DNA of 64,000 nucleotides from Blastocladiella emersonii ATCC 22665 (taxonomy: Eukaryota; Fungi; Blastocladiomycota): NCBI GenBank assembly GCA_025594325.1, contig JANHCV010000007.1:1116001-1180000 (forward strand), written 5' to 3'. The notes under the pieces are model-generated. The model was not told where the DNA came from, made no database searches, and was given only the letters and a program-made list of their open reading frames with translations. Below, piece after piece: positions 16,759 through 60,034 of the stretch (within the stretch, counting starts at the first letter, position 1; each line of letters opens with the position of its first letter). The position numbers were made by a program, and so were the translations under genes.

Positions 16759-18108
16759 CTACTCCTCGTCCGCGGTAAACAGCGCAAGCGGGAGCCCCGA
16801 CTTCTCGTCGCGACGCGTGTCGCGCTGAGACTCCCCGCTCAACGTGCGCCCGTGCCGCAGCTCGTCGAGCAAGGCGCGCGAGTCCTTGACAAACTGCTTG
16901 CCCAGAACGTCGTTGCCGCGGTCGCCGAGGGCGGCCATCATTTCCGTGTAGAGCGGAGTGAGCGGAGCGATCGTGCCCCGTCCGAGTCCAAGGAACGACG
17001 CGACGCCCGGGTTGCCCTACTTGCACGGGGGGAGTGAGTGACTGGGGTAACGAGCGAGAGCGGCGAGCAGAGGGGCCGCACCAGCGTGGCCATGGTCGCA
17101 ACGAGGATGGGCGCAAGGTGGTGGATCGTAACCAGCTTGGCCTCCGGGCCCTCGTCCCGGGCCGCGCGATCGTTGAGCCGGCCGAGGTACGCGTCGATGG
17201 CGGCAAACGTGTCCACTAGGTTCGTGAGGCCCATGTCAGTCAGTGATCGCGAGGCAGCAGGCATAGCTGTGCGCGTACCGTCGATCCAGTGCATACCCCG
17301 CTCGACCACTTGGACGAGGAGAGGATGAAGCGACGATGCACTCGTCCCATCATCATTCGCCGGCCTCAGCATCCAGTGACGGTTGAACTCGAGGCTGCGA
17401 ATGGCGCGAGCGGGATCGAGAGCGCGCAAGGTCGGCCGGATCGATGCGAAGCGTCTGTCCTTGAGGCACTTGAGCAGGGCCAAGCTGAGGCTGCCGCGAA
17501 GTCGAGTGCTCACCCGCACAAACTGCGTGTAATACTGAATGACGGGCGGGACGTGTCCGTCAATTGCACCGTAGCAGCAAGCACCCCCCGGGAAGTACCT
17601 TCTCCAGTGCCATAGGCTTCGTGCCCGAACCACACAGCTGGACGTAGTCCGCATAGCAGTGGCGGCGGACGATGTGGAGCCCCGCAAACGGCCCGTAAAC
17701 GAGAACGCTGACAAACAGCTGCACACGGAGCGTGATCGGCAAGGAGCGCAGCGCGCCGCCAAACCGGCGCCGTTTCGTGCCACGGCTAGAGTGTCAAAAT
17801 GGCATGTGAGGTGCGATGAAGCCTAAGAGCGCAGCTCAAAATCCGTACTCGGACGCACCAACATCCGCTTCATCGTCATCCTCGCCGGCGGGCGCCTCGA
17901 GCAAGTCATCCAGCTCCTCAATTCTATCCGTTTTGATCACGGGCAACGTTGCAGACGGTTTGACGGCGCCAGCTCGGCCCGCTTTCGGACGCAGGCGGCG
18001 CCGCGAGACAGTGTTGGCGCTAAGCTCCATTGCCGGCGGCGACCCGCCCGCCGAGCGCTCACGAAGGCGCTTGCTGCGACGTAGCGGCGTAATTGCATCA
18101 GCTTTCAT
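16759..18108 (-). CDS. Unknown 5-exon family, copy A (apparently intact, 364 aa)
   Basis: Hand-spliced exons 18108-17849, 17785-17599, 17534-17279, 17215-17082, 17016-16759; introns of 63, 64, 63 and 65 nt, all GT..AG; open frame throughout. Motifs PLRRSKRLRE, VYGPF..HCYADY, SLEFNRHWM, LHPLL, AIDAYLGRLN, LGKQFVKDSRALLD, SGLPLALF. Confidence 0.8.
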
Positions 18109-18225
18109 GGCTATTTTGTTTGATTGGCGTTCCACCAGACAGGGCAAGGGCGGTGACGGCGGTGACGGCGGTCGGGCGGTCGGGCGGCCTTACGACGATC
18201 GACATGTTTCAGCCTTCGCACGTGC

Positions 18226-18238
18226 GTGGCGCAACGCG
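18226..18238 (-). promoter_or_regulatory. Conserved 13-bp upstream element of family copy A
   Basis: GTGGCGCAACGCG on + (CGCGTTGCGCCAC on the coding strand), 118 bp from the ATG; identical upstream of copies C, D, F and G. Confidence 0.6.
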
Positions 18239-18321
18239 TCCGGGGAGGGAGGTCGACGAAGATGCGGGACTCGGAGCAGCTCAAAGTGATAGTGAACGAT
18301 GATGTATCGATGTACGCAGAT

Positions 18322-19136
18322 TCACTTGTCTGTGGCGAGAAACATGGCCATGGGCAGCCCCGACAGCTCCTCGCGCGGCACGTCGCCGGCTGGGCGGTCA
18401 AACCCGTCGCCCGCGTGAAGTTGGTCGCTGTGCAGGTTCTTCACGAGCTCGCGCGCGTCCTTGACAAACCGGTTGCCGAGGACACTGCCCGAGCTGGCGT
18501 CCTGCAGCGCCGCCAGCGCCTCGTTGTACAGAACCTGGACCTGGAGCGGCGGAAGCCGGCGCGGGTCGAACCCGAGGTGCGTGATGATAGCGAGGCTCGC
18601 CTGCGATTGCGTCGCGGTTTATGTGTTAGTTCTCGGTCACTTCGACGAGTGAACAGCGCCGCGCGAGTCGTACAAACGTCGCCACGGTGATGACGAGGAC
18701 CGGCGCGAACTAGCCGAGCGTGACGGCCGTGTGGCCTTCGCCTTCGGCTTGGGCGAGGCGCGCGTTGAGACGCTCAAGGTAGTCCTCGATGGCCACGACC
18801 ATGTCCGCTGGAAATACATGAGATTTGCGTCGGAAACGCGTCAGTGGCCGGCGCTCCAGCGGTGGGAAAGAAACCCCACGAACTGTCGTGCTTCTTCATG
18901 ACGCGACGAAGGATCTCGCTGAGAAGCGGGTGGATGATGGACGACAACGCCGCCGACTGCGGCGATCCAAGCATCCAGTGTCGGTGGAAGTTCAAGGTCC
19001 GCAGGTCGCTCGCCGAGTTGACGGCAGGCAACGTTGGTCGGAGCGCCGCCGCCTTCTTGTCGCGAAGCAGCGCGGTCATGGCGCTGTTCACGCGGGTGCG
19101 CTCGCGCTGGACCGCGTCCGTGTACATTTTGCGGTC
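18322..19136 (-). pseudogene. Unknown family, copy B (exons 3-5 only, premature stop)
   Basis: Homologous exons 3-5 with splice sites at the same positions (LNFHRHWM, AIEDYLERLN, LGNRFVKDAR). In-frame TAG at 18712-18710 where other copies have His/Gln. Exons 1-2 not found. Confidence 0.8.
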
Positions 19137-19275
19137 CTTGCGAAAGGCGAGCGAGTGAGTTAGCGATCATATGAGCCCTAAACTGCGCGCATCTGGTCAA
19201 AGTCGACCGCGACCTCGTTGGACTCGTTCATAAGTTGGACATAATCGGCAAAGCTGTATTCGTACTGAACCAGCG

Positions 19276-20755
19276 CTACTCATCGTCCTCGCCCATGGCG
19301 AACGCCGCAAGCGGGAGTCCCGTCCGCGCCTCGCGGGGCGCGTCGTTCTGTCGCGCGTGATTTTCAGTCGCCGTGAATGGACTCAGAGGAAGCGTGTGCA
19401 CGAGGGCGCGCGCATCCTTCACAAACCGCCGGCCGAGAACGCTGCCGCCGTTGCTTGTGTCCTGGAGCGCCGCCAGGGCCTCATTGTATAGCTCTTGCAG
19501 CGGCGGGAGCTCCAAGTGACTGAGGCCGAGGTGCGACACGACGCCAACGTTGGTCCACGCGTCAAAGCAAGGGTGAGTTCCAGAGCGTTGGAAGAAGCAG
19601 TGTAAATGGCCGCACCAGCGTCGCCAACGAAATGACGATCAGCGGCGCGAGCTGGTGAAGCGTGACGACCACGCGGTCGCCGTCGTCCTTGGCCTGAGCA
19701 GCAGTGCGTGCGTTGAGCCGCTCGATGTATGCCTCGATGGCGGTGATACTGTCGCCTAGACGCGGCGGACGAGCGGAATATGGGGGTCGTGTCAGTGATC
19801 GCGCAAGGGGACAATCGAGTAGGTAGCAAATACCCTCGGGCCAATGTATGCCGCGCTGAACTGCGAGAACAAGCAGCGGGTGGAGGGTGGACGCCTCGGC
19901 ACTGAGCGGTGACGAGTTGATCATCCAGTGGCGATTGAACTCGAGACTCCGAACATCGCTGGCCGAGGCAACAGGAGGTAGCGCTGGACAAACTGAGTGG
20001 TTCCGCTTGGCTCCAAAGAATCTTTTCGCCACTAACGAAAGCAGGGTACGGAGTCGGTGGATGACAGTCGCGAGGTGCTTGCGGTACTATTCCACGCAGT
20101 GCGTGACACGCACGCATGCCGTCACATGCCAAGTCAGTACACATCTGGCTTGCGCAGGCTCGCGCAAGCAAACGTGATCGTACCTCATCAAAGCTCAGCA
20201 GCGCCTCGGACACGCCCATCAGTTGGAGGTAGTCCGCGTAGCAGTGCTCGCGTACGATTTCGAGATTCGAAAAAGGGCCGTAGATAAGCACACTTGCACG
20301 AAGCTGGACTATGAGGTCGTTTGGGATGTCGCGCAGGTTCCGCCGGCAACGGCGTTTCGCTGGACTGTGACAGCGTGTGCGCGCCGTGAGTATCGAGGAC
20401 AGTCAAGGAGTAGCGGGGTCGCTGAAGCAAGTCTGGGCGAGAGCACGGACCCTCGAGTATCACCCTCGCCGTCGACATCGTCCTCAGACTCCTCATCGTC
20501 GTGGCTCGCCTCGCCATCGCCTGAGACATGACCGTCGCTGCTCGAGACGTCGGAAAGCTCATTGTCACTGTCGCTCAAGCCCCCGCTCCACCCCGTGGCA
20601 ACCGTGGCCAACGGCTCGCCCGGTCCGTCTGTCCCAGGGCGCAGACGTGCCCGTGCAGCGGGCACGGCGGTCGACTCCACTTCTGTCGGCTGGGCTGCGT
20701 CGCACTGGCGCAGGCGCTTGCTGCGGCGGACTGACGTAGTTGCATCAGGTTCCAT
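19276..20755 (-). CDS. Unknown family, copy C (open exons, last splice acceptor mutated AG to GG)
   Basis: MEPDATTSVRRSKRLRQ start, acidic tract, IYGPF..HCYADY, SLEFNRHWM, AIEAYIERLN, LGRRFVKDAR. The intron-4 acceptor reads GG at 19556-19555. Confidence 0.7.
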
Positions 20756-20838
20756 GGTTTTATCGGTGCTCAGTTCGGCGCGGCGGTGTTCCGTTGAACG
20801 GGAGACGCGGCGATTTGCCGGGCAGGCAGTGCGAGCGG

Positions 20839-20851
20839 GTGGCGCAACGCG
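20839..20851 (-). promoter_or_regulatory. Conserved 13-bp upstream element of copy C
   Basis: GTGGCGCAACGCG on +, 84 bp from the ATG at 20755. Confidence 0.6.
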
Positions 20852-21121
20852 GTCGCTGAAGGGCGACTGAAGTCGCGCTCTCGCTCGCTGTCCCGAAAGG
20901 CCTGGATTGATTGCAAAGCACGCGCTCTAGTAGTTCGTCCGCGCCCAGCGTCAGCAGCAGCAGGGATAATACTCTGACAGCGTTGGGTTCGCGCATCGCC
21001 CGCTCTCCCCGCTCGATGCCGCCGCGGGACGCTACCTTGAAGTCGCACTCAAGTTGCGATGTCACAAAAGCGTAGCAAAAGGACTGCTTCAAGATTCGCG
21101 GTACAGAAAATGCGAGGAAAC

Positions 21122-22607
21122 CTACTCGTCTGCAACAGCGAGCAACGCGAGCGGGATGCCCGACTTGTTGTCGCGGGGCACGTCGACGAGAGGCTCGCGA
21201 CCGGCCATCATCGGGATCTGGTCGCGGGGCAGGTTGTCGATGAGGGTGCGCGCGTCCTTGAGAAAGTTCTTGCCAAGCACGCTGTTGGGGTCGTTGAGCG
21301 CTGCCAGTGCCTCGTTGTAAAACACCTGGACCGGCGGGATGCTGCTCCGAGGAAGCCCGAGATGCGAAGCGACGGCGACGTTCGCCTACGTAGCAAGAGT
21401 CAGTGCTCGCTGAACGCGCATTGGTGGCGACGCGCAACCGTACAAAGGTGGCGATGGTGATCACGATATGCGGCGCGATCTGTCGCAGCGTGATGGGCGT
21501 GTGCTCGCGGTCCTGCGTGCGGGCCATGCGGTCATTGAGACGCGCGAGAAAGGCTTCGATGGCCGAGATGCTACTCTCTAGATATCGAGCGGCGGACGGT
21601 TAGTTGGCTTCCACCCAGCGACGGACTTTCGAAGCGACAGCGGATATCACGCACCTTCGGGCCAGCGCATACCACGCTCAACGAGGTTGGCCAGGAACGG
21701 ATGGATCGTAGTACGCGCGCCGCCCGACGAGGGTTTGATCATCCAGTGGCGGTTGAATTCGAGACTGCGAACGTCGCCCGCCGAGTCGATTTGAGGAAAG
21801 CTAATTCGCGTCGAGCGCGCTCGCTCGCCTTGAAGGGCACGCTTCGTTTTGCCATGCATGTTGGAGCGGAAGCCGTGGACGACCAGCAAATATTGCCTGC
21901 GGTACTACATGGTGACGAGCGAGTGCGTCAACAATAATGAAGTTGTCGTGTTATTCGTCAGCGCGGGGGCGATCGAACCTCGTCAAAGCTCACAGCGGTT
22001 CGGTCTGCGCCCGCCAGCTCGAGGTAGTCGGGGTAGCAATGGTTGCGAATGACTTCGAGATCGGCAAACGGTCCGTAAACGCAGGCGCTCGCCCGAGCCT
22101 GCACCTTGAGTGCAATGGGGATCTGGTTTAGAGCTCTCGACGACCGCTGACCAGAGTTGGTAGAACTGCGGCGGACGCTAGGTTGCGTTTGGTTAGATAG
22201 AGCGCGGTTGGTCAATGACAAGGAAGGCGCGGGTCGGTCGACCGTTGCTGATGCAACACGAACCCATGTGCATCTTCGTCAGATTCCGCGCCCGAGCTTT
22301 CGTCCTCGCTCTCGCTCTCACTCTCAGAGGCCGACTCGTCGCTGCTCGGCAGGTCAGACAGGTCAGACAGGTCGGACAAGTCGGACAGCTCGTCCTCGCC
22401 CATGCCGCAGCCCTCTGCTCCGACCTTGTGCTGCGGAGCGGCCGTAGTGGGTTCAGCGTTCGGTTGATCCGTCCCAGCATGAAGACGAAGAACCAAGCGC
22501 GGCCGCGAACCGCCGGCGAGCGCGGACTCGAGTCGCGGCTGCTCGCCCGCCGGCCGCTCAAGAGGGCGCTCGCTGAGCCATCCTGGCGCTTTTGCATGAG
22601 GTTCCAT
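21122..22607 (-). CDS. Unknown family, copy D (apparently intact)
   Basis: MEPHAK start, LSDLSDLSDLSD plus acidic tract, four canonical introns at the same positions as copy A, VYGPF..HCYPDY, SLEFNRHWM, AIEAFLARLN, LGKNFLKDAR, SGIPLALL; no internal stop found after splicing. Confidence 0.75.
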
Positions 22608-22692
22608 GAGTTTTACGTCGTCGTGGGCGTGGGAGCGCTCCATGGCCTGGCGTGGGGACGGGTGGCGCTCGACCGGTTTCACGGTGCGTTGA

Positions 22693-22705
22693 GTGGCGCA
22701 ACGCG
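22693..22705 (-). promoter_or_regulatory. Conserved 13-bp upstream element of copy D
   Basis: GTGGCGCAACGCG on +, 86 bp from the ATG at 22607. Confidence 0.6.
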
Positions 22706-22860
22706 TTCCTGCGCCGTTACTCGGGCAGCGCCGAGCCCGCGCCTTGGCTTTGCGAACTTAGGCCAAGGGAAACGTGCCGCGTACTTGGTCCTTCGTTCGC
22801 CAGTACCAGTTCAGCTTGTTAGCTTAACTACGACGCATCAACCGCTACGCATCGACCACC

Positions 22861-45174: not shown

Positions 45175-45755
45175 GAATCGCTGCGACTGCTGCTGCTCCC
45201 GCTCCTGCTTCGGATAGTGGTGCGAGCGTGCGAACGATTGAACTGGAAAGGGGCAGGAAGCGGGACGCGGCTGGCTTTGTACACCGGTTCCAGCGCGGGA
45301 AGCTCACCCAAAAGTGAATTTTTACGAGGCTCCGTCGTGCGCAACGCGAGCTTGCTGCTGACGGCTAACGAGCTTCGCGTTCAAGGTCGTTGATCGCGGA
45401 ATGATGGCGCGCATTTCGACGGTTTCGCACGTTCATTCACTGCCCTTCATGTTGCAACAAGTTTTGGAGAGATTTATTTTTCAACAGCGACGAGTCGTGC
45501 GAAAAGTTTTGGGTGAAGGGAAGGGAAGGGAAGGGAAGTCGGATGAGGTGGTCGCGCGTCGCGGAGCCGCGTGCGGCGCGCGAGGCGCGATGGGAGATAA
45601 GATGGCTTGACCGAACCCCCGGAGCCCGGCCCGATCGAGCTGGGGATTCAGCTGGGGTTTGGAGCTCAGGTTCAAAGTTGCACGTCCTCTGCAAACGACA
45701 ATACAAACACAATGCTAGATCTATCATTTGTCATTTCATCAGCTACAAGTTCCCA

Positions 45756-47863
45756 TTAAGCCTTGGGGGGAACAGGCGGCGGCGCGAGAATCCGCGACTT
45801 GGTCCGGCGCAGACGCACAGACGACGTGCGCTGGACGGCAGCCACGGCTTTCTTGAGGTCAGCGAGCGACCGCTGCCGGAGCCGCGCGATACGCTCCTCG
45901 TCCTCCTTGGTCATAAGCGGCGGACACTGCTCGACCTCGGCTTCGGTCGCGCTCGTGTCCAGCTTGGGCGGGTCGCTGAGAACCTGGCCCCCGGACGCGC
46001 GCGCGTAGTTGGGCGTCCACTCGACCCCGTTCGTGCGCGCGAGCCCGGTCCAGCGCGGGCCCCACACCCGCGTCGCGTCGCGCGTGAGAAGGCGGCCATC
46101 GTCGAACAGACAAGTCTCGACGCGGAACGGCGGCCGAGAGCCGGGCGCGTCAGCGATTTCGGTCAAGAACGAGAACACGCGCTGATGCACGCGTCGCGTG
46201 TCGTTGTGGCCGATGAGAACGAGAGGGAAGCAGTGAGGTTGGTGAATGAACACGTCGTGAACGACGAACGAAGCGCGGCCTAGGTCCGAGAGCCGCGCGA
46301 GGTTCGCGGCAAAGTAGATGTTGTCGTCCAGGAGCTTTTCGTCTGTTCCCGTGCACAGGTACACGGGCGGCCACGGTGCCCGCGTGCTGCCGCGATCGCG
46401 GCACGGACTAATCATAGGATGCGTTGAGGCAATGCGCTTGGCTTCCTTGGCACCGAAATGGTCGCGACCGACGTAATAATCCCACGTCTCGACCGCATGG
46501 CGGCCGAGAACGGACTCGGCCGGCGTGACAAGGAGGTCAAACTGGTTTTCGATCGTACTCGGGGTCTGGAGCGGCAAGTCGGTCCACGGAGAGATGCAGA
46601 CGATGGCCGAGGGCAGTGGATGGCCTTGCTCGCGGAGGAAGATGGTTGTTGAGAGCGCAAGATTGGCGCCAGCAGAGTCGCCCATCAGCACGATGCGCGA
46701 GGCGGGAATCCGCTCGACATGCGTGAGATACAGGTAAGCCGATGCGATGTCGTGGAGGGCATCGGGAAAGAGGTGCTCGGGAGAAAGGCGATAAGCACTA
46801 GACGAACGAGACGGAGATGGAGGAGATGGAGCGCCTGAGACTCATATACCAATCAGGAAACGTACACGTTCAGGAAGCGCCGGCGAAACATGCTGGCATA
46901 ATGAGCGACGACGGGGGAATAGAAAGCCTTGCTGCCGAAAAGGAAAGCACCACCGTGGACGAACAGGACGACGCGGTCGCTATCAACCACGGGAGGAACG
47001 ACCCAGTCTGCGCGCACGATCCACGAGCACACGTCGGGCACGCGCGGATACGTGGTGAGAAGGTTGGACTCAAGCACCAAGCGCACCGATCCGTTCGTGT
47101 CAGCTGTGACAGTAGCCGGTGCGGGAGTATCGGACGGCGCGCGCAAATCGACTTGCCACGAGAACTCCGTGACAGCCGTGTCGCGGAACAAGAGCAGCTC
47201 GACCGGTCTCTTGCTTAGTTTGCTGAAAGCCGAGAAGATCTCGCGCATGTGCGCCATGTCCATGGCGCCAAAGGTCGAGCGAGACGCACGAATAATCACG
47301 TCGGTGACCAGGTTACGGTTCGGACGCTCGGGACCGGTGAAGAGCGACGTGATCATGGTGGGCAGATGAATGAGACCCACGAATAAAAGCAAGAGAGCCG
47401 AACTGAGAGCCGAGCGTGGCGAGTAGTCGTAGCCTTCGAGGCGCAGGGCGCGATGCACAGGGCCGTTGACGCGCGCCGGATCGAAGTATGCATCAGGATC
47501 AGAGTCGTTGTTGGGGCGCGTCCACGCGCCAGCGGCAGCCAGGTCAAGCGGTACCTCCTCGTCAGCGTAGAGCGTAGTGGCATCGTCGATTAGAGCCGTA
47601 GAATCGAAGGACGCGTCTTTGGCGACAGGTCGGCTCTCGAGCTCAAAAACGAGCTCGGGCCAGGACGAGTCGATTGCAAGCGGCTGCTTGGCGCCGTCCT
47701 CGTCCTCCAGTGCAAACTGGCCCAAAGAGCTGACGAAATTCAAGTCGTAGAGCGGCGGCTCGAATGACGGCGGGACAGCCGGACGTGGATCGTCAGACTG
47801 CGTCGGAGCAGCAGGCGCGACATGCTGCAGCGGCGCCGGCGCTCGTTCATGCTTCGAGTCCAT
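45756..47863 (-). CDS. Alpha/beta hydrolase, hormone-sensitive lipase (GDXG) family
   Basis: LFVHGGAFLFGS oxyanion motif, YRLSPEHLFPDALHD, LMGDSAGANLA nucleophile motif, ISPWTDL, QPHCF; one intron near 46857-46797; long acidic N-terminal extension. Confidence 0.9.
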
Positions 47864-48416
47864 GTTGTCGATTCGTTGCAGTGAGTGAGGGAGGCCACAG
47901 TTCATAAGAAGAGCTTTATTTGTCAAGATCCGAGCAGAGAAGAGCCGACCCTTCCGGGCGAGGTCTCGTCCAGCGGCGCGTGTGAAACGCGAGCAACTCG
48001 CGGCGCGGGCGTTGAAAACGGCGAGCAACCTTCCACTTTCACGACCTCGGGCTCACTTTTCACACAGCCACATGTTTTGGTCTTTTTGGAAACCGAGTTT
48101 ATGCGTCAGTTTGCGCCTGTCTGGCGGATTGCTGAACGCCGATCCATGGCCAGACGGGAGACGCAATATCGCAGTTAGCGCGAGCTCGGAAGGCAGACAG
48201 CCCCATCGAGTTCCAGCTTTCTATATGATGATGGCCTTTGCGGCTCACAATGAGGCGACGATGCGCTCGATTGAACGAGAGCAAGGTTGAAGAGGGGAGG
48301 GACGCGATGGTCATGGGCGCGTGACCACCACCACCAGCGGCCGGGACCAGCCAGCCGTCCAGCCTCAGTGCTGCTCGGCCACCCCCGCTGCCGACCAGCA
48401 ACTCTATGCAATCGCC

Positions 48417-49238
48417 ATGTCACACGACGCAAAGAACGAATCCGATGCAGCGCTGCTCGCGCGCCTCGCTCAGCTCAAGGGCGAGTCGGGCCCGGCGCCC
48501 GCTGCCGCTGACGACGCCGCGCTGGCGTCCCGGCTGCGAGCGCTGAGCTCGCCGACACAAGAAGAGCCCGCCGTGCTCCCTGCGCCGCCCGTCGACCCCA
48601 TCGACTCGCTCGTCGCCGACCTGCTCGACAGCTTTGACAACGAGGACGAGGAGCCCATCCCAGACGACGGCAGCAGCGAGTGGGCCGCGTACAGCGCCGT
48701 CTTCGGTCGTGCGCTCAACCACGCCCCCGCGCTCTCGTCGACGGTCCAGACGCTGCTTGATCGCATCGACCCTGCCGGGACGCTCGCCGTGGCGGAGGTT
48801 GGTGTTGACAGCGAGGCGGATGCACTTATCGAGCAAGTCTCCGAGTACGTCCGCCTTGGTGGCGGTGCCGACAGCGATGTCGACGAGTCCGCCGCCGAGG
48901 CCGAGTGGGAGCGGCGGCTCGCAGCGCTCAAACAGGCCGAGATCCACCCGTCGCATGTCGGCAGTGCTGGCGAGGGCAAGTCCGCGCCACGCCCGGATCG
49001 GGGGCCCGGTCCCGCGTCGAGCAGTCGACCCGCTGACGACTCGGACCACGACGACGAGCTGTGGTGCTGCATCTGCAACGACGACGCGACGCTGCAGTGT
49101 CACGGGTGTGACGGCGACCTGTACTGCGTGCAGTGCTTCCGCGAGGGGCACGACGGCGACACTGGTCTTGCGGTCCACGCACGCTCGTCCATTGCCGGGC
49201 TCCGTGCGGCCCTCGCAGCTGGTAAGCGAAAGGCATAG
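48417..49238 (+). CDS. ZFYVE19/ANCHR-like protein with C-terminal B-box-type zinc finger
   Basis: Repeated L.RL..L[KR] helices ([27 protein letters not shown]) and [30 protein letters not shown]. Confidence 0.75.
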
Positions 49239-49414
49239 ACGCCAAAATGTAACGCTTTTTTTCCCTGCACAACCTCCGTTCCCGCGAGCCAGGCCCGTTC
49301 GCGAAGTCGGAGGACTGGTCGGGGTGCCACCAGGCTGAGACGAGCGCAGAGTCGAGCGCTGCGGCGCCGCAAGGGACCACCCCTCCCACACGCGAGAGCC
49401 CAGCGCACGCAACC

Positions 49415-52400
49415 ATGAAATTAGTCAATGCAATCGTGTCCACGGCTGGGTCCGGTGGCCCGTCAGCTGCGATAGGCTCCCGCTCGCGGATCGCCCTCTA
49501 CGTGTCGGTCGCGCTGCTCGCGAGCCTGGGCGTCGGCGTTGCTGCGAGCCTCTACCGCTCTCGCTCCCATCGCAGATCGCTTCGCGTTGATCCCTCGGGC
49601 TTGTTCGGCGGCGCTCTCTCAAGTCCGTATTGCCCGAATTCGGCGTCGAGTGACTTCGCTTACGATCGGACGCCGTAGGCGAGGACCTTGCGTTTATCGT
49701 TCGCTCGTTCGTGAACTTTGCCCGCACTGCCGAGTTGAACGAGGATATCGTTCGGTACGGACTTGAAGCAACTTTGGCATGGCCCGTGCTGACGGTGATC
49801 GATGAATAGGGCAAACGCAATCTGCACGGAGTTGACTGCGAGTGGTACGATTGCGTGCCCTCTCTCGCTTCTCTCGATCCCCGCATGACGCCGTTGTCGT
49901 TGTAGTTGATGATCTGCGCGCCCTGCTCAACGCGCTTGGCCCGCCTGACGCTCAAACTCGTGCCGAGGCCGCCTGCCTGCTCAGCGGGTTGATCGAGAAG
50001 CGTACGCCACTGAATTGACCCGTTGCGAGCAATTCCGAGCTGACCTCGACCCTTGCCTAGCCGAGTACGCCGCCGCGCTCGCGAACTCGCTGCTCGAGCG
50101 TGTGCTCGCGGGCGTCCTGTCCGAGCCCAACGCCGCGATCAAAATGGTCTTCGTGGACATGCTTCCGATCCTCCTCCGTGTCGGTACGCTGTTACGGTTA
50201 CGCCGCAACTGAATCCAGTCCAGGAACTCACCGCACAACGGATTGGGTAGACTCCGAGGATACTCTGCTCGTCCGTGTTCTGGAGCGCAAAGACGTGCTC
50301 GCTGCGTTTGCGGACCTGTTCCTCCATCCCATCAAGGAGACGCCCGGACTCTCCCGTCGCGCGTGGAACTCGACGATGCACATTCTGCGCCGTGGTACGC
50401 TGCTCAAGCCCTTGCCCGCGACGCGAACGACCTTCGCTCACCGCGTTCATGTAGTTCCGACCGTTCAGCCGCTTCTCGACATCGGTCTGCTCACTCGGCT
50501 CTTCCTCGCCGTCGCCAACGTCAGCGGCGACGCGTCGTGGCGAGGCGACTACTGCACGATGCTCGAGCCTCTCCTGGCGCGCACCATCATCCCCCAACGG
50601 ACCACTTTGTTCGCCGAGTGGCGCGGCTCGAACCTGGATCCCGTCGCCGCCGTGATCGCCCTCTTCAACGAGGACGGTTCCCCCGCCGCAAGCACCGCCA
50701 TGTCGCTCCTCGCCTTCATTGCCAACGGGACCGCGTGGCGCGACGAGATCAACTCGCACGCCGCGTCGCTTGTCGATGGCATGCTGTCCGCGTCCAAGGC
50801 TGGCACCACGACCGGTTTTCCCCTCGCCCTCGCCACGATCATCGTGAACAGCGGTACGCACAGCTCGAGGCCAGGTCGTTGTCGAGACCTTGCTTGACAT
50901 GCGTCTGCTGTAGAGCGGGCGGCCGAGTACCTCATCCAGTCTGGGACGCTGCGACGGTTTCTCGACGACAACAAGTCGACGCTCAGCGAGTCCGAGAACT
51001 CCGAGATCATCCACACGCTCATGGTCATCCTGACTTCCTTCGAAATGGACTTTGGTACGCGTCCCCTTGACCCTCATCCCTCACACACTTCATCTCACTC
51101 AACCCTCGAAATTGGTAGCTGAGGCGGACGCAGAACTTCGTCGGACCTTCCTGATCGACTTTGCGTACCAGCACATCGGCGACACCGCGGCAAGCGTGCT
51201 GTTCCTCGTCCGCTTCGACCCGTCGCTCGACCGCATCGCGCGCGCATTCGCCAAGACGGTTGCCGAGTACGCGAGCTCCGACACCATCTCTGAGTGCCTC
51301 ACCGCCGAGTTCACCGTCATCAACGCGGCGTTCGCGCTGCTCCGCGTCTCGCCCGAGTCCGCCACCATCCTGCTCGACGACGGGAACCTGTGGCCGCTGC
51401 TTCGCCGGTTCGCGCTCCACCCGGGCATGCGCGAGCGCGAAGAGGTTTCGGGCCTCGTCGCGCTGCTCCTACGCGCGCGCCCCGACCTCGTCGACGACGC
51501 CGTCGCCACCTTCTACGGCCCGCTTCTCGTCCAGCTCAACGCCGCGCTCGCCGAGATCGTCCCGCCTGCGGTCGCCCTGATCCGCGAGTCCCGCAAACGC
51601 GGTGGCGAGTTCGACGAAGCGGCCGTCGCGCTGCTCAACGAGCGGATCGGGCACGTCGAGAAGAACGTGTTCGAGTTCCTGCGCAACCTCGACCCGGTTA
51701 CCGTCACCGCCATGTGGTCCACCTCGCCCGCCGCCCGCCAGGCGTTTGTCGACATCCTCGCGCTGTGCGAACGGTCCATGCTCGCCATCGTCGCCGACAA
51801 CGAGGGCAAGCTGTTCCCGATCATGCGGCTCGCGCGCCTGGTCGAGGAGATGGCCGCACAGCACGGCACGGGCACCTCGGGCGCGGCCAACGAGTTCATG
51901 GCCGACCTCGTCTTCTCGGGCAGCTCGGAGCTCATCCTTAACTTTCTGTACCTCCCGTTCTCGCTGCTCCGCACCTTCGTCGGGTACGACGAGCTGCGCG
52001 ACGCGGTTCTCGGCCAGCTGCCGCTCATGGCGTGCGCGTCGCTCCGGTTCGGGTACCAGGTCCTCGCGCGCGACTTTGCCGCCACCGCGCTGTACGCGCC
52101 GCACGGCCAGTGGCTCCAGCTCGAGCAACTCGCCATGCTCAACAACCGGAGCGCGCTCGTCAACTCGGACCCGGACTACGCCGCGGCCGACATCGTGTCG
52201 ACCGAGTTCCTGCGCCGCGCCATCATTCGCGACCCCGCCCTTGATCCCGTCCACTGGGCCAACGTCTCGGGCAACACGCCGACAGGGATCTGCGGCACGA
52301 CCGTGTTCAACTTCTCGCACACGGCCAACACGGCGCGCGCGTCGCACGGCGTGACGCGGACCGGCCGGTTTGCGTTCACGGTCGATGCGTCACTCGAGGG

Positions 52401-53697
52401 CATCCCAGTGATCGGGTGGACGTCGCACGCCGGCCCGCTGCGCGGCAACGACTACACGCTCGCGCCGGCCGCCCGCGACACGTGCGTCATGGACTTTGGT
52501 GCCGGCCGCGCCATGCACGCGGGCAAGGTGCGGTTCCTCAACAAACGGCTCGCCGAGTCGGGCCCGATCGTTGTGACGATCGACCTCGACCGCGGCGAAA
52601 TCGCGACTGCCGCCTACGGCCAGGCGCCGCAGGTCATTTTCCACGGCATCGACGCAGCAAAGACGTGGTACCCGGTCGTCGTCCAGCCGCCCAGCTCGTG
52701 CTCGATCGCCCGCTTCGACGCTGCGCCCGAGGGCTTCACGTCGATCACAGCGGCGGTCGCGCAAGGCGCCGCGGTCGCCGTCCGCCCTGATATCGAACCC
52801 ACTTCGCTTCCCACGGCGGTCCCGGCGTTCCGCTCGGCAGTCGCGACCACGGCCAAGCAAGGTCTGCTGCCTGACATCAACTTCTCGTCGTACTACGAGA
52901 GCACGCTCGTCGCCCCGCGCTCGCCGTGCACCGCTGTCGGCCTGCGCGCGCTCAACCACGCGCACTACCTCTGGGTAGCCGCGGGCAACGGCGTCGAGTT
53001 CACGGCGCAGTTCGTCCTCGGCGCGCACCCCAGCCTGCCGCCCAACGAGCGCGCGACCGCGCTCGAGGACTCGGTCGAGTGGCGCGAGTGGATCCCCGCA
53101 CTCGCCGACTTCATCGCGACGAGCCCGCCGCGCGCCAAATTGGACGAGTCGCAGCGCGTGGCGATGGTCGTGCGGTTTGCGGTCCGCGAGGGGTCCGTGG
53201 AGGCGGGCCGGCGCGAGTGGGACGTGTCGTGGTCCGAGCTCGGCTCCGATCCCGCAGCGCAGGACGTGGCGCTCTCGAGCGCGTTCCTCGTCTCCCGGTT
53301 CGCGCAGCCGCCGGCCAACGCGCCTCACCCCCACGAGCCCGTGCGGATGCAGCTCGGCGTTTCCATCGGGACCCCGCGCCTGTCGTCCGACGAGCGCGGG
53401 GACCCGGAGCTCGCGCTGTTCGCGTCCCTGCTTGTGTTCGGCGTGTCCAAGGGCCACGACAGCGCCATGTCGCCTGCCGACCTGTCGCCTATGATCCCGA
53501 TGCACGGCGGGTCTGGCAAGCCGGACGACGGGCTGCTGCTCCCAATCGTGATTGGTGCGCGCCACATCGAACTCGCGCTGCACGTCGGCGAGGGCGGGGA
53601 TGCGACCAAGGGGCCCATGGCGCGCGGGTGCCCGACGCTCGGTCGTGACGTGCTGAATGCCTGGGGTCTTATCAAAGACGGGGAGGAGAAGGAGTAG
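49415..53697 (+). CDS. Large membrane-anchored helical-repeat (ARM-like) plus SPRY-like protein
   Basis: N-terminal TM (IALYVSVALLASLGVGVAASLY); several short 5' exons with GT..AG introns; long final exon with helical repeats and a SPRY-like beta region (FAFTVD..PVIGW..GPIVVTIDLDRGEI..FHGID..WYPVV). Confidence 0.75.
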
Positions 53698-53943
53698 ATG
53701 TGATACATGCGGTTTTGGTTCGTTGTGGTTTGAACTCCGCCTCGAGAAGAGCGGTGTACATTGACCTTTGGCCGTGGCATTTGTGCACAAGACGCGTCGA
53801 TCAAGCAAGTGATGGCCGCGAACCTGATCCGTAAACCTCACGCCCAAGATCTCCCCTCACGCGCGCGCCGCTCAGTTGTATCTCGTGGCGAAGTATCACG
53901 AACATAACTGAACGTATAGCCCCATGCAGTTTCTCGTCTCCTA

Positions 53944-54456
53944 TCACATACCCTCGGCCTCCTCCGACTCGACCTCGTCCACGCGGTCCTTGAGCGACTT
54001 CATCGAGACCCACAACGTGTAGCCGTAGCAGAGCAGCATGAACGCGTAGCCCGTGTATGACGGCATGTAGAAGGAGGGCGCGACGTTGAACACGCACGCG
54101 ACGGGGAGCAGCACGTAGACCCATGGCATGGCCAGGAGCTGGACCACGGCGTACGCGCTGGCCAGGATCGTGACAAGTGCAGTCGCAGCGACGATCGGGA
54201 GAATGATGGACAGCTCGGACACCATCTCTTGAATCATCGCCGGGGCTGCCGCGGTGCTCGGTTTGTTCCAGAGGTTGTACGACGAGCGGATGAGCTCCGG
54301 GATGGCCGCCGTGCTGAGGCAAGCGACCAGAAACAGAGCAGAGACTGCAACACGGCGGCCATGGTTCCGCCGGGCTTGGACGGCAGCCTTGGTGGGATGG
54401 TGCGGTTCGTCGTCCTCGAAATCGCTGGGAACAGTCGTGCCCATCTTAGAATTCAT
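53944..54456 (-). CDS. Small multi-pass membrane protein, function unknown
   Basis: 170-aa ORF with about four hydrophobic segments and an acidic C-terminus. Confidence 0.65.
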   Translation of the reverse strand: MNSKMGTTVPSDFEDDEPHHPTKAAVQARRNHGRRVAVSALFLVACLSTAAIPELIRSSYNLWNKPSTAAAPAMIQEMVSELSIILPIVAATALVTILASAYAVVQLLAMPWVYVLLPVACVFNVAPSFYMPSYTGYAFMLLCYGYTLWVSMKSLKDRVDEVESEEAEGM

Positions 54457-55012
54457 GGTAATGAGAGAGCTATGAGCGGAGAGAGAGCGGATGAAGCGGT
54501 CGAGCAGCGCGTGTTTTGACCTTCGCGGCATCGCCACGCGAGCCACAAGCAAAAAGCTTAACCGCGAGCTGCAGCGGAGAGGCCTGATTTGGAATCCGCC
54601 ATGCGTCCTCAAACGTGCTGAAAACGTGTTCCCGGCACACGTTGGCGGCCCGGATTGATGCGAGGGGTGATCGCTGCCACAGCACGCGTTCAGAGCAGCA
54701 CGCTTTCAGATAAGCGGTTTTTTTTACAGGTCGGTCAAGGGAACTTTTCAATCTTCGTGTAGAAAAAGAAAACACAATAGAGGACCTGCGGGAAAAACGG
54801 CGTGGCCGCCGGAAAAAAAAAGGCGCGACCTGAAACACGCGGGGCAGGTCACGCGCCGTGACCGCCACGGTCGGTCGCCCACCGCGCTCCGCTCCCTCGA
54901 CCCTTTCTCTCCTCCGCACGTCGTGCTGCACGCAAAATACACCGCTCTAACTCGGTGAAACACAATGAATCAATAACAGAATTTCCATGCAGCACGTCGT
55001 CAGGCCGTGGCC

Positions 55013-55687
55013 ATGGCACTTGCCGTCGCGGTCGTCCTCGCGCTGCATCAGCTTGTGAGGCTTCTCATGACCCCACGCCCGCGTCCGCGAGGTCGGCAGC
55101 TGTGGCAAGCCGCACCGTTTGACTTCGATCAATTTGACGATGCTGATTGCTGGGCAAGTTCCGCTTCCAGCGCAACGACATCATCTACCTCGCGGATCGA
55201 CTCCTTCCTCGCTTCATCCAACTTGGCGATCGGCACGGTCCCGTCCCTCGCCTTGCTGCTCTTTGCGTTCTTCTTCGCCGCCTTTCTTACCCGTGCCGGC
55301 TGGGCGACCTCTGTACCAACTTCCCGTACGACGAAACGCGCCTTTCCCACATCGTCAACTACCTGCAACGATGCCGTGGTGCTACGACACTCGCATCTCT
55401 TGGATCGGCTCCAAGCTCTTCCGCGGAAACCCGACGGTCGTCACTACGTGCTGTCCAACTCGGCGTATCCTCAGTTTCCGACGCTTCGGACTCCGCCCCG
55501 TCGAGGGCTCACGCCCGAACTTGCAGCGTACAAGCGCGCGATGAGTTCGGCACGCTCAACGATCGAGTGGGGCTTTCGCTCGTACGACGGAACGCAGCGC
55601 GAGCGCCGCGGCCAGGGCGTCATGCGACCGGATCCGTGCCACGCGCTCGCCGACGCGTCGTTCCGCGCGCTGGGCGCTCTGAATTGA
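55013..55687 (+). mobile_element. Decayed PIF/Harbinger-type transposase (DDE_Tnp_4-like)
   Basis: FDFDQFDDADCW/KFRFQRNDIIYLA..LAALCVLLRRLSYPCRLGDL..RLSHIVN, then YVLSNSAYP..P..LTPELAAYKRAMSSARSTIEWGF. Frameshifted; the central catalytic Asp segments are missing. Confidence 0.75.
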
Positions 55688-55693
55688 TTTTCT

Positions 55694-56539
55694 TCATGGT
55701 CTCGGCATAGGTGAGCGCAGCACGTAGATCAGCGACCGCGGCCTGTAGCGACCAGATCTGGTTGCCACAGTAGTCGTGATGACGGGAAGATCGGCGGCCT
55801 TGCGTGCAGTCTCGTCCAACTCGCTCTCGCTGTTCTCATCAGCAGTGGCGGCCATGAGCTCAATCGAGGCCATGCGCATTGCTTGGCGAGAATCGTGCAC
55901 CGGTGCTTGAAGCTGCAGATTGTCTCGACCAACGCGGCAAGGGCCTCGTGCTCATGAGTCTCAACAACACCTCGGTCGCCTCCATGAGGCTGCGCCTGCC
56001 TATTCGGCCTGCCCTTCTGGCCCAAGGCGATTTGACGCAGACCGCGCTCAAGAACCTGGCTTGATGGGGGCAAGAATCGCGCAACCGCAAGGCACACAAC
56101 GATGGCAAACATTTTCATTGCAGCGCTTCACGGCGTTCTCAAGCCATGGTCAGCGTTTAGCCGTTTGATCGCGAGAGATCTGCGATTTCCAGGCATTCTG
56201 TTAGGAGACATCCATGTTTTATTGAAGGCAAAATGCCTGTCACAGCAGGAGCGCTCCGTCCAACCTGATCACCCACGTCTGACAGCTCGCGAAGTGAGGA
56301 AATTGCCAAGGAACCATCGAGAGGATCCGCGATCCAGCATCCGCACCCTATTGCCGCGACGCATAACTCGCAAGAACCGTAACCGTCTCATCGATCCCAG
56401 AATGTGCAGCGAGGGGGGAGCGCGATCCCCCAAACTCGTCGTGAGCGAGTACGGAGCGCGATCCGTGGCTCGCTGCACATCGAGCATGACAAGACGGTCC
56501 GTCACAGGACTGTGCGTGAGCCGTTGGTGGGATGCACAA
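55694..56539 (-). mobile_element. Possible remnant of the Harbinger second (accessory) ORF, convergent with the transposase
   Basis: Broken minus-strand frames including SPLAAHSGIDE and a charged helical C-terminal piece; orientation fits two-ORF Harbinger elements. TIRs not identified. Confidence 0.3.
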
Positions 56540-57307
56540 ACTTAGTGTCGCGCGAGAGCGGCGTTCGAGGCGGGTGCAGATGCGGAATCGCGGATCGGTC
56601 TCGTTGGTGTCAAAGGGTCTGAAGCGAAGGACAATGCTGCAATGGCATTGCTCGAGTTTGAGGAAAGTGAGGCCTTAAAGCAGTCGAGTCTGCCATCAAT
56701 TGAAAAGTGAAATGCGCAATGGTTGATGCGTGCGTGGTTGTTGAGCCACCCACAATCGAGTTACACAAGCGGCGGCGGATCAACCCGCCAGCGAGGACCT
56801 AAGTCGCCAGAACAGGTTAGCGAGATCATTACCTGTGAGCAGCTAAACAGAGTAAATACTCATTCACGAAGTACTTAAACCTCATCGAGAATCAACTTCC
56901 TCTTGCACACAATGGCGGGGTGCTGGGCGAGCAGTCCTGCCCCCCTCACACTGTTCCGTGCGCAGGCATGCGGCTATGTGCGCGAGCGCTGTCAAAAATC
57001 GAGAGCAACAGCAAGGCAATTCAACGAGTCGCCAACGGGATAAATTGCAGCGGCCCGCGTCGTGGTTCGACTTTGCGCGAAGTCAAGGCCGCTGGAACGC
57101 TGGAAGTTCAGGCGAGCAAAGCGAGCGCGCTCCGCTGGAAACCGGCCGGATGCGAGTCCCGGGGGTATTGCATAAGTTGCAGCAAGTTATTGTTCGACGG
57201 CGTGTAGCCAGCGTTTCATGGTAGTCTATCACGCAGCGGGGCGCGGGAGAGAGAGCAAGCGATGACCGAACACGGCGTTTTCTTCCCAGCGGGCAAGCCA
57301 CGCGACC

Positions 57308-57320
57308 CGCGTTGCGCCAC
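57308..57320 (+). promoter_or_regulatory. Conserved 13-bp upstream element of copy G
   Basis: CGCGTTGCGCCAC on +, 85 bp before the ATG at 57405; same orientation relative to the gene as in the minus-strand copies. Confidence 0.62.
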
Positions 57321-57404
57321 CAGCGTGAGCTGAAACCGATGGCGCGCTCGTCGCTTCGCAAGGGGTCCACTCCTGCTCAAAGAGCTTCCACGAATCGTGC
57401 TGCC

Positions 57405-58755
57405 ATGAAACTTGATGCAAAGAACCGGCCGGTCCGACGCAGCTCGCGCATCCGTGCGCGCAGGGCGGGGTCGGCAGCACCGCCGCTGCCCCGCCTGCGA
57501 CCTCGGATTGCCCGGTCGAAGCCCGCGGCTGCTCTCCCCAAAGCGGCGAAAACCAATGGACGCAAACGGAGACGCCGCACCGCCCCGGAATCCGATGACG
57601 ATGATGCCGATGCGACGGAGAGTGAGCGTGAGGATGAGGGCGAGAGCGATGCTGAGAACGGCGACAGTGGGACCCGTGGGTACGGTGCGCGGTGCACGCT
57701 CGACTACGTGGCCGCACGACTGACCTCGCGCGGCTACGGTAGACCTGCGAGGCGAAGCTGGCGGGGAATAATCATGGGAAGTCTATCGGCAGCGATCAAG
57801 GTGCAGGCCCGCGCGAGCATGTTCATCTACGGCCCGTTTGCGAGCCCCGATATCATTCAAAAGCACTGCTACTCGGACTACCTCAACGTGCTCGGCGCGG
57901 ACGAGTCGCCGATGTCCTTTGAAGAGGTGCGGGCCTCTGGTTCGTCTATGCTATGTATGTGGCGCTAACATGTCTGCTGCGTGACTAGTACCACAAGGTG
58001 TTTTTGGAGACGATCCACAAGTTTCGCGGCTCACTGGGTCGGGCTGTGACGAAGCTCCTTGGTGCTGACCGCCACGCCTCGATCCGGCCACAGCTTCCTG
58101 CGCTCAAGACCGTGAGCAAGATTCAACCAGCACTGGATGCTGAAACCTAAGGCTGCCGGTCGCGGTCGCTCGCGCGGACTGCACCCGTTTCTTGGCGAGA
58201 TTGTGCGGCGGGCGCTCGCCTGGCGCGACGGTACGATGACTCGTGTTGCATTCGAGCCGTTGGACACTAACCACCGCTCGGACCTTTGCTTCGCTTAGTC
58301 AACGCCGTCGCCGAAATCGAAGCTTACCTCGAGCGCGTCAACGCTCGCACAGCCGCGCGTGGCATCGAGTCCAAGTTGGTGACGCTTCACCAACTCGCGC
58401 CAGTCCTTGTCGCCACGGTCGCGACCTTCGTACGCCGTGTCCGGCTGCTCACCATCATGACTCTTCCCTCAATTTGCGTCACTACGTGTAGGCGAACATT
58501 GGCGTCGCCTCGCACCTCGGCCTCGACCGCCACTCGCTCCCGCCGCTGCAGCAGCTGTATAACGAGACCATCGCGTCGCTCAACGGCCCGAACGGGATGC
58601 TCGGCAAAATGTTCATCGAGGACTCGTGCGCGCTTCTCGACACGCTGCGCGGCGAACGCATGACGAACGCGGAAATGGTTGAGAGCACGCGCGACGTGCC
58701 TCGCGACGCGCACTCGGGGCTCCCCGCGGCCGTGTTCGCCAGACGCGACGAGTGA
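57405..58755 (+). pseudogene. Unknown family, copy G (frameshift in exon 3)
   Basis: MKLDAKNRPVRRSSRIRA start, acidic tract, four introns at conserved positions, IYGPF..HCYSDY, AEIEAYLERVN, ASHLGL..LPPLQQLY, SGLPAAVF. The frame shifts at 58121-58127, where RSLE is missing before FNQHWM. Confidence 0.82.
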
Positions 58756-58970
58756 TATGAAGGTGTGAATGAATTGGGGAAGATTTTGATGATTTTCAAC
58801 GAACCATGAGTGGTGCGTCCTGCGATGTATGCCACGCAGGCTCGTTTGAGGGACCGACTTAAGTTGCGGACTTGACGCGTCGATCATCCAAGTGTGACGC
58901 GGCCGGGGTCTCACAACTCTGAGCAGGCGTGGGGTTGATACAGAATTGTGTGGTTTCTTCGTTAAACGCG

Positions 58971-59520
58971 TCATGTTCTCTCCCGAACACGAGCAGCTAC
59001 CATCGCGCGACTAGCAATTGTCATTGAAAACGTTGGAATCAACGAGCAGAGCAATTTGCGGACTAGACACACTTCGCGGCGCAAGTGCGGAGGCGGGAGT
59101 GACGGGAAGTTCGAGCCAAGCAGCGAGGATGAGATGATCAGGATTTGCAAGTTTTTTTTTTTGCCAAAACCATCACGGTAAGGCAAAGTGGTCAACATGA
59201 AGTTGCTCGGAGCTGTAAAACGATTAGGGCCCATATTGAGTGTCGCGGCTTGCAATGAACCAGCCAGGCTTGATGCGCTTTCCTGCCAACTGTTGCAATC
59301 GGCAACATGTTACAAACGCGACAGGATTGATGGATGAATGCAAAGCTCTTTGCGAGATCCGACGAGCTGACAATCCAGCGTCAGGCGGGCGCTTGAACTG
59401 TGGCCAGCTGAACCGGCAGACTTGGTCGCGAGTTCTTTGCCCTAATGTCCGTGTCTCCAAAGATTTGCCGCACACGATCCAGGCAAGCGTCGTACGGCTT
59501 CGCAAAGTTGCTCCCTCGGA
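58971..59520 (-). pseudogene. Probable highly decayed family copy H
   Basis: Minus-strand frames give SRPSLP..*RWIV..FIHQ (compare RPTLP..RHWM..IHP/IHQ) and LIISSSLLGSNFPSLPP (compare ASHLGL...LPP) in the correct order; weak similarity. Confidence 0.4.
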
Positions 59521-60034
59521 ATTAAGCATACATGCACAGGGGGTTGGTGTGCTGGTACCGCGGTCAAAACGCAATCCAAGAGTCAACGAGCCACTTGCCA
59601 AGCGAGGAGAACGAGAGCCCGAGTCGTGAGAGATCTGTCTTGAGCAGAGAAGCGTAGACGATTCAAGACACCCTCGAGCGCCCTCGACCAACTCGAGCGA
59701 AGCGCGCAAAACCGCTAGGCACCAACGCGAATAAACACTCAGCTGTTCTACATCGGGGAGCCACAGACTCGAGCGATGCCGCCGTATTCATCAAGTTTGC
59801 ATAAAGTTACATGCGATTCTAACGAGTGTGCGACTCGGCAGAGTCGAGGTGCGGGGAGAGGAAGCGCTTTCAGGGCGGCGAGCGGGGGTGGGAGTCAGCG
59901 CGTCGCACCACGCGTCGCGCCACCACGTGCGCGACTCCGCTTCTCCAAACTACGCCGCGGCTCGCTGGTTCACTCAGAAACCATCAGGATGATGAGAAAC
60001 AAGGACAGGATATATGTACAGCATCAGACAAGGC

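Follow-up and report, generated by a model that had tools for sequence, protein, structure and literature searches.

A window of 64,000 nucleotides on the 2.0-Mb contig JANHCV010000007.1 (about positions 1,116,001-1,180,000; assembly GCA_025594325.1) of the fungus Blastocladiella emersonii ATCC 22665 contains seven copies (A-G) of one five-exon gene, recognised with per-exon E-values of 1e-12 to 1e-35, which chance cannot account for. These copies, most of them damaged, belong to a family of real protein-coding genes, not transposons, that has grown by local tandem duplication and lost members by decay, the surviving duplicates all being old. When considering what such a family might do, we tentatively favour, at somewhat less than an even chance, the possibility that its members are co-regulated nuclear proteins, namely chromatin- or DNA-associated adaptors that recruit partners.

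Under this hypothesis, the family proteins would be imported into the nucleus; a conserved RRSxR[LI]R peptide would direct this import, or serve as an arginine anchor on an acidic surface (for example, the acidic patch of the nucleosome), or both. Partners would be bound by the helical domain and by the C-terminal peptide, and paralogues would differ from one another chiefly in their linkers and surface residues. We arrive at a nuclear or chromatin role because RRSxR[LI]R and a second basic element, RPRLRP, are conserved, a KRRR cluster and acidic tracts are present, and the beginning of the predicted domain (residues ~33-100) superposes on helix-turn-helix units at 2.4-3.0 A. An earlier note on this DNA had suspected a nuclear protein from the N-terminus, which appears plausible, on sequence grounds, in view of the two basic clusters and the acidic tract.

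Gene structure, age and extent of the family

The copies were located by tblastn searches, in which the translated exons of copy A served as queries, and by a family hidden Markov model (HMM) run over all six frames; the spliced models were drawn by hand from three-frame displays and then checked by script. The exon blocks break at profile positions 60/61, 145/146 and 190/191 in every window copy and in 22 copies elsewhere, so that the intron positions are indeed common to all copies, as had been proposed, and the core motifs that the earlier note listed are all present in the window copies. The introns of A, D and G are invariably GT-AG and 57-86 nucleotides long (63-65 nucleotides for the four of copy A, whose HMM blocks span 3-60, 60-191 and 191-276, and 58-86 for those of copy D); the introns of copy C (61-97 nucleotides) are GT-AG except for the last acceptor. 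Two splice junctions of copy A match the NCBI model P0001, and several of copy D match NCBI partial models. Four sequencing runs of the source strain that were compared with the window are genomic and show no splice joints; no RNA run was listed for it. In self-BLASTN comparisons, the DNA of different copies can be aligned within exons only, at 65-77% identity, the introns, spacers and flanks being unalignable, and neither terminal repeats nor conserved element boundaries were found around the copies. In the inferred frames, the GC content at third codon positions (GC3) is 0.69-0.89 versus 0.51-0.57 at the first and second positions (GC12), which is the coding signature of this genome. The GC3 bias is weaker than in the neighboring housekeeping genes (GC3 0.89-0.96); in part for this reason, the arrays lie in islands of lower GC content (0.58-0.63, as compared to 0.69-0.72 in the flanks).

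The coding GC3, the fixed GT-AG introns, the alignment confined to exons, the purifying selection in the closest pairs and two confident AlphaFold models (see below) are the grounds on which we consider the copies real genes. The window copies are the following:

16759..18108, minus strand: copy A, intact, 364 amino acids, spliced model with a single terminal stop
18108-17849, 17785-17599, 17534-17279, 17215-17082, 17016-16759, minus strand: exons 1-5 of copy A
18322..19261, minus strand: copy B, decayed; exon 1 gone, only a remnant of exon 2, in-frame stop in exon 4
19276..20755, minus strand: copy C, complete frame of 385 amino acids, last intron acceptor GG, not AG, at 19555-19556
21122..22607, minus strand: copy D, intact open reading frame of 396 amino acids, N-terminal basic motifs degenerate
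22607-22264, 22177-21979, 21904-21655, 21577-21444, 21385-21122, minus strand: exons 1-5 of copy D
33413..34290, minus strand: copy E, fragment; exons 3, 4 and 5 recognisable, exons 1-2 gone, long branch in the tree
34834..35542, minus strand: copy F, fragment; exons 1, 4 and 5 kept, exons 2 and 3 lost
57405..58755, plus strand: copy G, five exons with GT-AG introns, frameshift in exon 3 near 58120

The earlier count of seven to eight copies is thereby reduced to seven, each lying where it had been placed; the presumed eighth copy (H) is not detectable anywhere in the window with the six-frame family HMM at E <= 10. The statement that only A and D are intact is right for A and right for the open reading frame of D, which is uninterrupted, but copy D has lost both N-terminal basic elements by substitution, with WLSERPLE in place of RRSxRLR and RPRLVLRL in place of RPRLRP. 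In copy G, the frame is shifted by a short deletion near 58120, which takes the 'RSLE' out of the SLEFNRHWM motif of exon 3. In copies A, C, D, F and G (start codons at 18108, 20755, 22607, 35542 and 57405, respectively), an additional ATG, in the +1 frame, follows ten nucleotides past the start codon (GATGCAA/CATGCAA) and opens a reading frame of 53-90 amino acids or more, which overlaps with exon 1; the conserved D/H-A codons probably give rise to this ATG incidentally.

How old are the copies? By the Nei-Gojobori method, the proportion of synonymous differences (pS) is ~0.45-0.57 for almost all pairs. Such a plateau, under a strong GC3 bias, indicates synonymous saturation, so that a family-wide ratio of nonsynonymous to synonymous substitution (dN/dS, omega) is uninformative. 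Omega was therefore taken from the three pairs closest in dN only, and its values of 0.23, 0.36 and 0.40 show that these closest pairs are under purifying selection. In a maximum-likelihood tree built on 26 cores, the median terminal branch measures 0.67 substitutions per site and two deep subfamilies are seen; the window copies B-E cluster with moderate support, A stands alone, and G clusters with two copies that lie ~26 kb downstream, outside the window. Tandem duplication and decay (~11 of 29 copies damaged) thus bear out the birth and death of copies that the earlier note described as rapid, but the rapidity is not borne out, since the terminal branches are long and the synonymous differences are on a plateau.

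The whole family comprises at least 29 copies mapped by an HMM scan in five loci, seven of them in the window and 8, 4, 4 and 6 in four further loci, where all copies are arranged head to tail in array units of 1.5-2 kb. One of these further loci (L002) overlaps an array ~184 kb upstream of the window that belongs to the same family, and several annotated members fall outside the five mapped loci. By locus tag, the members on the contig of the window are H9P43_006206-8, 006247-55, 006301, 006321-28 and 006335-40; those on two other contigs are H9P43_006770/1, 006777/8 and 009397/8. Of the 29 mapped cores, 18 are uninterrupted and 11 frameshifted or truncated. The only near-identical copies seen are H9P43_006770/006771 and H9P43_009397/009398, on contigs of 1.80 Mb and 1.25 Mb, pairs that share 90%-identity protein clusters, which suggests either that a segment was duplicated recently or that haplotypes were left uncollapsed.

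The published gene models render the family hard to see. The NCBI models of window copies A-G are fragments of 94-161 amino acids only: H9P43_006321 (P0001), the sole return of a word-based search with exons 3-4 of copy A, is an incomplete model covering the 3' half of copy A, and P0020 and P0021 are the models of copies C and B. Conversely, P0002, P0003 and P0005 (the latter two at loci L005 and L002) merge parts of two or three adjacent copies, and P0015 (H9P43_006338, L004:1-2927) merges a RabGAP-TBC gene with the family copy downstream of it. The passages searched of the paper on the genome assembly of this B. emersonii strain (PMC9730499) do not mention the family. Split into fragments and chimeras, the family escapes surveys of gene families; corrected models would raise the gene count by dozens.

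To judge how far the family extends beyond this genome, an exhaustive search with a profile of exon 3 to the C-terminus of copies A, C, D and G (profile A1) was run over 1.84 billion representative proteins. It returned 25 proteins at E <= 0.001, 23 of them at E <= 1e-10, and the 20 of these whose names were checked are without exception B. emersonii hypothetical proteins, while two more, P0020 and P0021, represent window copies C and B; two weak matches outside the H9P43 set are unnamed repeat proteins from ENA and were set aside as noise. Word-based protein searches, one of them with a full-length profile, returned only the fungus's own proteins, and a scan of contigs in Joint Genome Institute (JGI) metagenomes with a back-translated pattern gave 363 pattern matches, none of which was confirmed. 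Pfam yielded nothing credible for single exons, for seven full-length members at E <= 1 or for 26 members of the alignment at E <= 10; the best profile match among PDB sequences (E 0.17) is noise, and a structure search of the ESM Atlas produced no match. A feature search of the ESM Atlas with P0001 found unrelated clusters only (0.50-0.55), and one with P0008 found NTF2/SnoaL clusters (0.83-0.85) that share few features and clash with the all-alpha model described below, so that they were dismissed. Thus, the suggestion that this is an unrecognised family stands, its sequence relatives being confined to B. emersonii hypothetical proteins, and the searches produced no match to a transposon reading frame or to a well-described family. 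In the public data searched, the family appears to be restricted to B. emersonii, with the proviso that Blastocladiella britannica and genomes deposited without annotation may lie outside the searched proteins; the public proteomes of Allomyces and Catenaria are presumably among them.

The neighboring genes differ from array to array, and no transposase or reverse-transcriptase Pfam families were found among the called neighbors of the five arrays. A metacaspase gene (Peptidase_C14; window 24137-25799) adjoins the cluster A-D, and a subtilisin-like protease gene (Inhibitor_I9 and Peptidase_S8) adjoins two other arrays (L003:12832-14025, minus strand, and L005:4377-5555, plus strand). The conserved C-terminal peptide of the family, for its part, includes the sequence VPR-D, at which an Arg-specific protease might cut. 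The protease genes beside the arrays may reflect coincidence or segmental duplication. Self-comparison also revealed three short tandem duplications, with units of 72-192 bp and 82-90% identity, at 23341-23502, 24290-24706 and 43227-43517; the first two lie in or near a repeat protein and the metacaspase tail, and the third is a minisatellite.

A promoter element shared by the copies

Alignment of the 120 nucleotides before the start codons shows that the family promoters have a 13-mer, CGCGTTGCGCCAC, in common. Of the 25 copies with a preserved 5' end, 17 have the exact 13-mer ahead of exon 1, and three more have it with one mismatch. Where the ATG was located, the 13-mer starts 79-140 nucleotides before it, or 91-140 nucleotides in the exact matches, and otherwise it lies at a matching distance from exon 2; the outlier is a single-mismatch site 508 nucleotides upstream of the ATG assigned to L005_10350. 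In the window, there are 7 exact 13-mers, and 10 at no more than one mismatch versus 0.77 expected. Those that precede family copies are listed here:

18226..18238, minus strand: 13-mer CGCGTTGCGCCAC of copy A, starting 130 nucleotides upstream of the ATG, then GCTGAAAC
20839..20851, minus strand: 13-mer of copy C, starting 96 nucleotides upstream of the ATG
22693..22705, minus strand: 13-mer of copy D, starting 98 nucleotides upstream of the ATG, then GTGAAAC
35621..35633, minus strand: 13-mer of copy F, starting 91 nucleotides upstream of the ATG
57308..57320, plus strand: 13-mer of copy G, starting 97 nucleotides upstream of the ATG, then GCTGAAAC

Over 149 kb, 32 sites were counted, of which 20 belong to family copies; an A precedes the 13-mer in 18 of the 32, giving ACGCGT, and (GC)TGAAAC lies 10-15 nucleotides downstream in 14. 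In about half of the units, a GCTGAAAC box is found 10-15 nucleotides past the 13-mer. The sequence flanking the 13-mer is not conserved; selection on a binding site accounts for the element better than gene conversion. Each unit carries its own promoter, and the family is probably co-regulated. A near-invariant 13-mer amid saturated divergence is a candidate binding site for a transcription factor of an early-diverging fungus.

Away from family copies, exact 13-mers occur in the window at 39869-39881 and 41755-41767 (both on the minus strand) and one-mismatch versions at 23761-23773 and 43855-43867 (minus strand) and at 59911-59923 (plus strand). An E-box-like sequence (CACGTG, TCACATGA) comes after some of the non-family sites. 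The pattern of open reading frames and GC3 behind the sites at 39869 and 41755 reveals no clear gene. Such sites may be promoters of other genes of the regulon or relics of lost copies.

Protein architecture and predicted fold

The proteins are built in one order: an N-terminal basic peptide, a variable acidic Ser-rich linker, a KRRR-like cluster, an all-alpha domain and a C-terminal peptide. The first ~20 residues, at the start of exon 1, are conserved as M-E/K-x-D/H-A ... RRSxR[LI]R and are followed by the RPRLRP element; RRSxR[LI]R is kept in 18 of the 24 copies that retain exon 2 and, in addition, in copy F. The linker is highly variable in both sequence and length, with exon 1 encoding from ~64 to 250 amino acids. 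Hence, the description of exon 1 as hypervariable, which had been given in the earlier note, applies to the acidic linker but not to the first ~20 residues and RPRLRP, which are conserved family-wide. In copy D, the linker (window 22330-22400, minus strand, exon 1) contains a perfect fourfold LSD repeat, (LSD)x4, and then SESESESE; expansion of short repeats seems to be how the linker grows.

Exon 2 begins with the second basic cluster (KRRR-like) and continues into the most conserved block of the protein, YGPF...HCYxDY. Among the 18 intact cores, 35 of 277 alignment columns are at least 90% identical, and one subfamily has another residue instead of the Cys in HCY; since no constellation of His, Cys and Asp is invariant in these cores, nothing suggests an active site. 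The last ~30 residues comprise a conserved DVPRDxxxG[LI]PxAxF peptide and an acidic tail. The possibility of an F-box in exon 2 (an 'LPxxL...V' pattern) was rejected, as Pfam gives no F-box at E <= 10 and no F-box protein ranks among the 50 best structural matches for either model.

Two annotated full-length paralogues other than A and D, namely P0008 and P0017, which are 33% identical to each other, were modelled by AlphaFold2 with 26-27 family sequences. The model of P0008 has a predicted local distance difference test score (pLDDT) of 84.7 and a predicted template-modelling score (pTM) of 0.81, and that of P0017, residues 100-386, has a pLDDT of 88.3 and a pTM of 0.82. Both show a globular all-alpha domain of ~250 amino acids that includes a single small beta-hairpin. 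Confidence is low in the N-terminal region and in the C-terminal peptide, as is usual for disordered segments, and the DVPRDxxxG[LI]PxAxF peptide is probably disordered.

Foldseek comparison of the models with PDB gave no match (best E 0.2, TM <= 0.2), nor did the comparison with viral models. Among 2.3 million fold clusters of the AlphaFold database, proteins with the DUF6532 domain (PF20149) occupy ~20 of the top 30 rows for both models. These matches span nearly the whole ~250-residue domain with E-values of 5e-3 to 0.3, probabilities of up to 1.00 and identities of 9-15%; the TM-scores of 0.40-0.49 lie below the usual 0.5, and the root-mean-square deviation is 7-12 A in the better rows. 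The PF20149 profile itself matched none of 26 members in hmmscan at E <= 10. Taken together, the models make a remote, unproven kinship to DUF6532 probable.

DUF6532 is an uncharacterised fungal domain found mostly in Agaricomycetes and multi-copy in fungal genomes; as it has no known function, the link to it provides no mechanism. A comparison of two Ganoderma species lists it among the additional Pfam domains, confined to parasitic or symbiotic fungi, beside KDZ, Plavaka and CxC2 (PMC8955403), and the searchable literature holds no mention of DUF6532 beyond this comparison.

A different likeness concerns the beginning of the domain. In both models, the first three helices (residues ~33-100) superpose on DNA-binding units over 50-85 residues at 2-3 A. 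Nearly all structural matches lie on these helices, and the best PDB entries returned by VIA-align are for the most part homeodomain, Myb/SANT, trihelix, Zeste, HMG-C1 and TetR N-terminal units.

Possible roles and comparison with known systems

Several observations weigh against a nuclear adaptor role. No Pfam DNA-binding family was matched even at E <= 10, N-termini that are both basic and acidic are common and non-specific, and RRSxR[LI]R could equally be a plain nuclear-localisation signal. The damage to ~38% of the copies implies that individual copies are dispensable. Finally, the putative likeness to CENP-C discussed below is incomplete, because the aromatic pair that follows the CENP-C anchor and reads the CENP-A tail is absent from the family peptide.

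The next explanation to be considered is a family of genetic-conflict genes, serving allorecognition, poison/antidote meiotic drive or anti-parasite and viral defence, in which turnover and variable regions would be products of an arms race. The tandem arrays with many pseudogenes, the variable linker of exon 1, the lower-GC islands, the restriction to a single species and the metacaspase gene beside the cluster A-D could all be read in this way. However, an arms race is at odds with the dearth of recent duplicates (the long terminal branches and the synonymous plateau), with omega of 0.23-0.40 in the closest pairs, and with a core as well conserved as this one; Pfam scans found no transmembrane, HET, NACHT, nuclease or kinase domains, and the neighbors differ between arrays. 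The strong constraint on the promoter counts in the same direction: because the 13-mer is near-invariant, a regulated host gene family seems a better description than an arms-race locus. With nothing that ties the family to allorecognition, poison/antidote or effector systems, we regard conflict as possible but doubtful and do not favour it.

A somewhat less probable alternative is that the family represents an expansion of sequence-specific transcription factors, with the three helices forming a helix-turn-helix DNA binder and the acidic tract an activation region. The superposition of residues ~33-100 of the two models on what are mostly DNA-binding domains speaks for this; furthermore, a basic pattern, Y-[RHQ]-K/R-[HQ], is retained where the third helix begins, with a conserved R ~12 residues on, and basic clusters flank the three-helix unit. 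Yet Pfam offers no match, kinship to DUF6532 is uninformative with respect to DNA binding, and the three helices are packed in a larger globular domain, so that the putative recognition helix may be buried. All in all, we consider such an expansion unlikely.

It seems highly unlikely that the gene is borne by, or derived from, a transposon. KDZ, Plavaka and CxC2 are transposon-associated, and the listing of DUF6532 with them in the two Ganoderma genomes would suit a DUF6532-like domain that is an accessory reading frame spread by mobile elements, as would the multiple copies in lower-GC islands. This notion is hard to reconcile with arrays that run strictly head to tail, four spliceosomal introns whose positions are fixed, a host-like GC3 and copies that are all old and divergent; moreover, terminal inverted and long terminal repeats, conserved flanks, and transposase or reverse-transcriptase genes beside any of the five arrays are all lacking. 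As for a decaying relic, once functional and now largely or wholly non-functional DNA, the one or two intact copies out of seven in the window and the fragmentary NCBI models might suggest it, but it is most improbable given the 18 uninterrupted cores among 29, the purifying selection in close pairs, a 13-mer that is near-invariant amid unalignable spacers and a family alignment that supports a confident predicted fold.

Returning to the nuclear adaptors, a bolder version of this reading, to which we give a rather low probability, would join a species-restricted battery of probably more than 35 genes for nuclear proteins, an experimentally unsolved DUF6532-like fold and one fixed composite promoter element that switches them all into a lineage- and stage-specific regulon for the reprogramming of chromatin in zoospore formation or germination, or else into a self/non-self or anti-parasite system. 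If true, this would provide the first functional handle on the large DUF6532 superfamily of fungi. Lineage-restricted tandem families are, of course, common in eukaryotes, and nothing yet indicates an unusual mechanism.

Comparison with known systems helps to place the family. With wtf and Spok drivers and HET allorecognition genes, it shares restriction to a lineage, multiple copies and abundant pseudogenes. It differs from them in that the signature features of wtf (transmembrane segments), Spok (nuclease and kinase) and HET/NACHT proteins are absent, and in that the Blastocladiella copies are old and under purifying selection.

With regard to chromatin, RRSxR[LI]R may resemble the arginine anchor of CENP-C in sequence. 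The family peptide, too, appears to be a short, conserved, arginine-rich peptide in a disordered region. In CENP-C, two arginines anchor on the acidic patch of H2A/H2B, and arginine anchors are an established mode of binding (PMC6776904). The likeness to homeodomain, Myb/SANT, trihelix, Zeste and TetR units consists in the superposition of the first three helices, encoded by exon 2 and the start of exon 3, with the basic clusters of the family adjoining them. The differences are that no Pfam match was obtained and that, in the family, the unit sits inside a larger globular domain; the family may also lack the conserved aromatic triad typical of Myb/SANT.

The resemblance to DUF6532 proteins, in turn, extends to a similar size of the domain and, in many of the matches, to its position behind a long N-terminal region, whereas there is no match at the sequence level and the TM-scores remain below 0.5. 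A basic peptide at the N-terminus, a C-terminal DVPRD peptide and a common promoter were seen in the Blastocladiella family only, whose sequences were the ones inspected for them. With a DUF6532-like fold, and with a compact domain, short motifs and a promoter that can each be mutated, the family would offer a tractable entry to a large fungal superfamily to which no function has been assigned.

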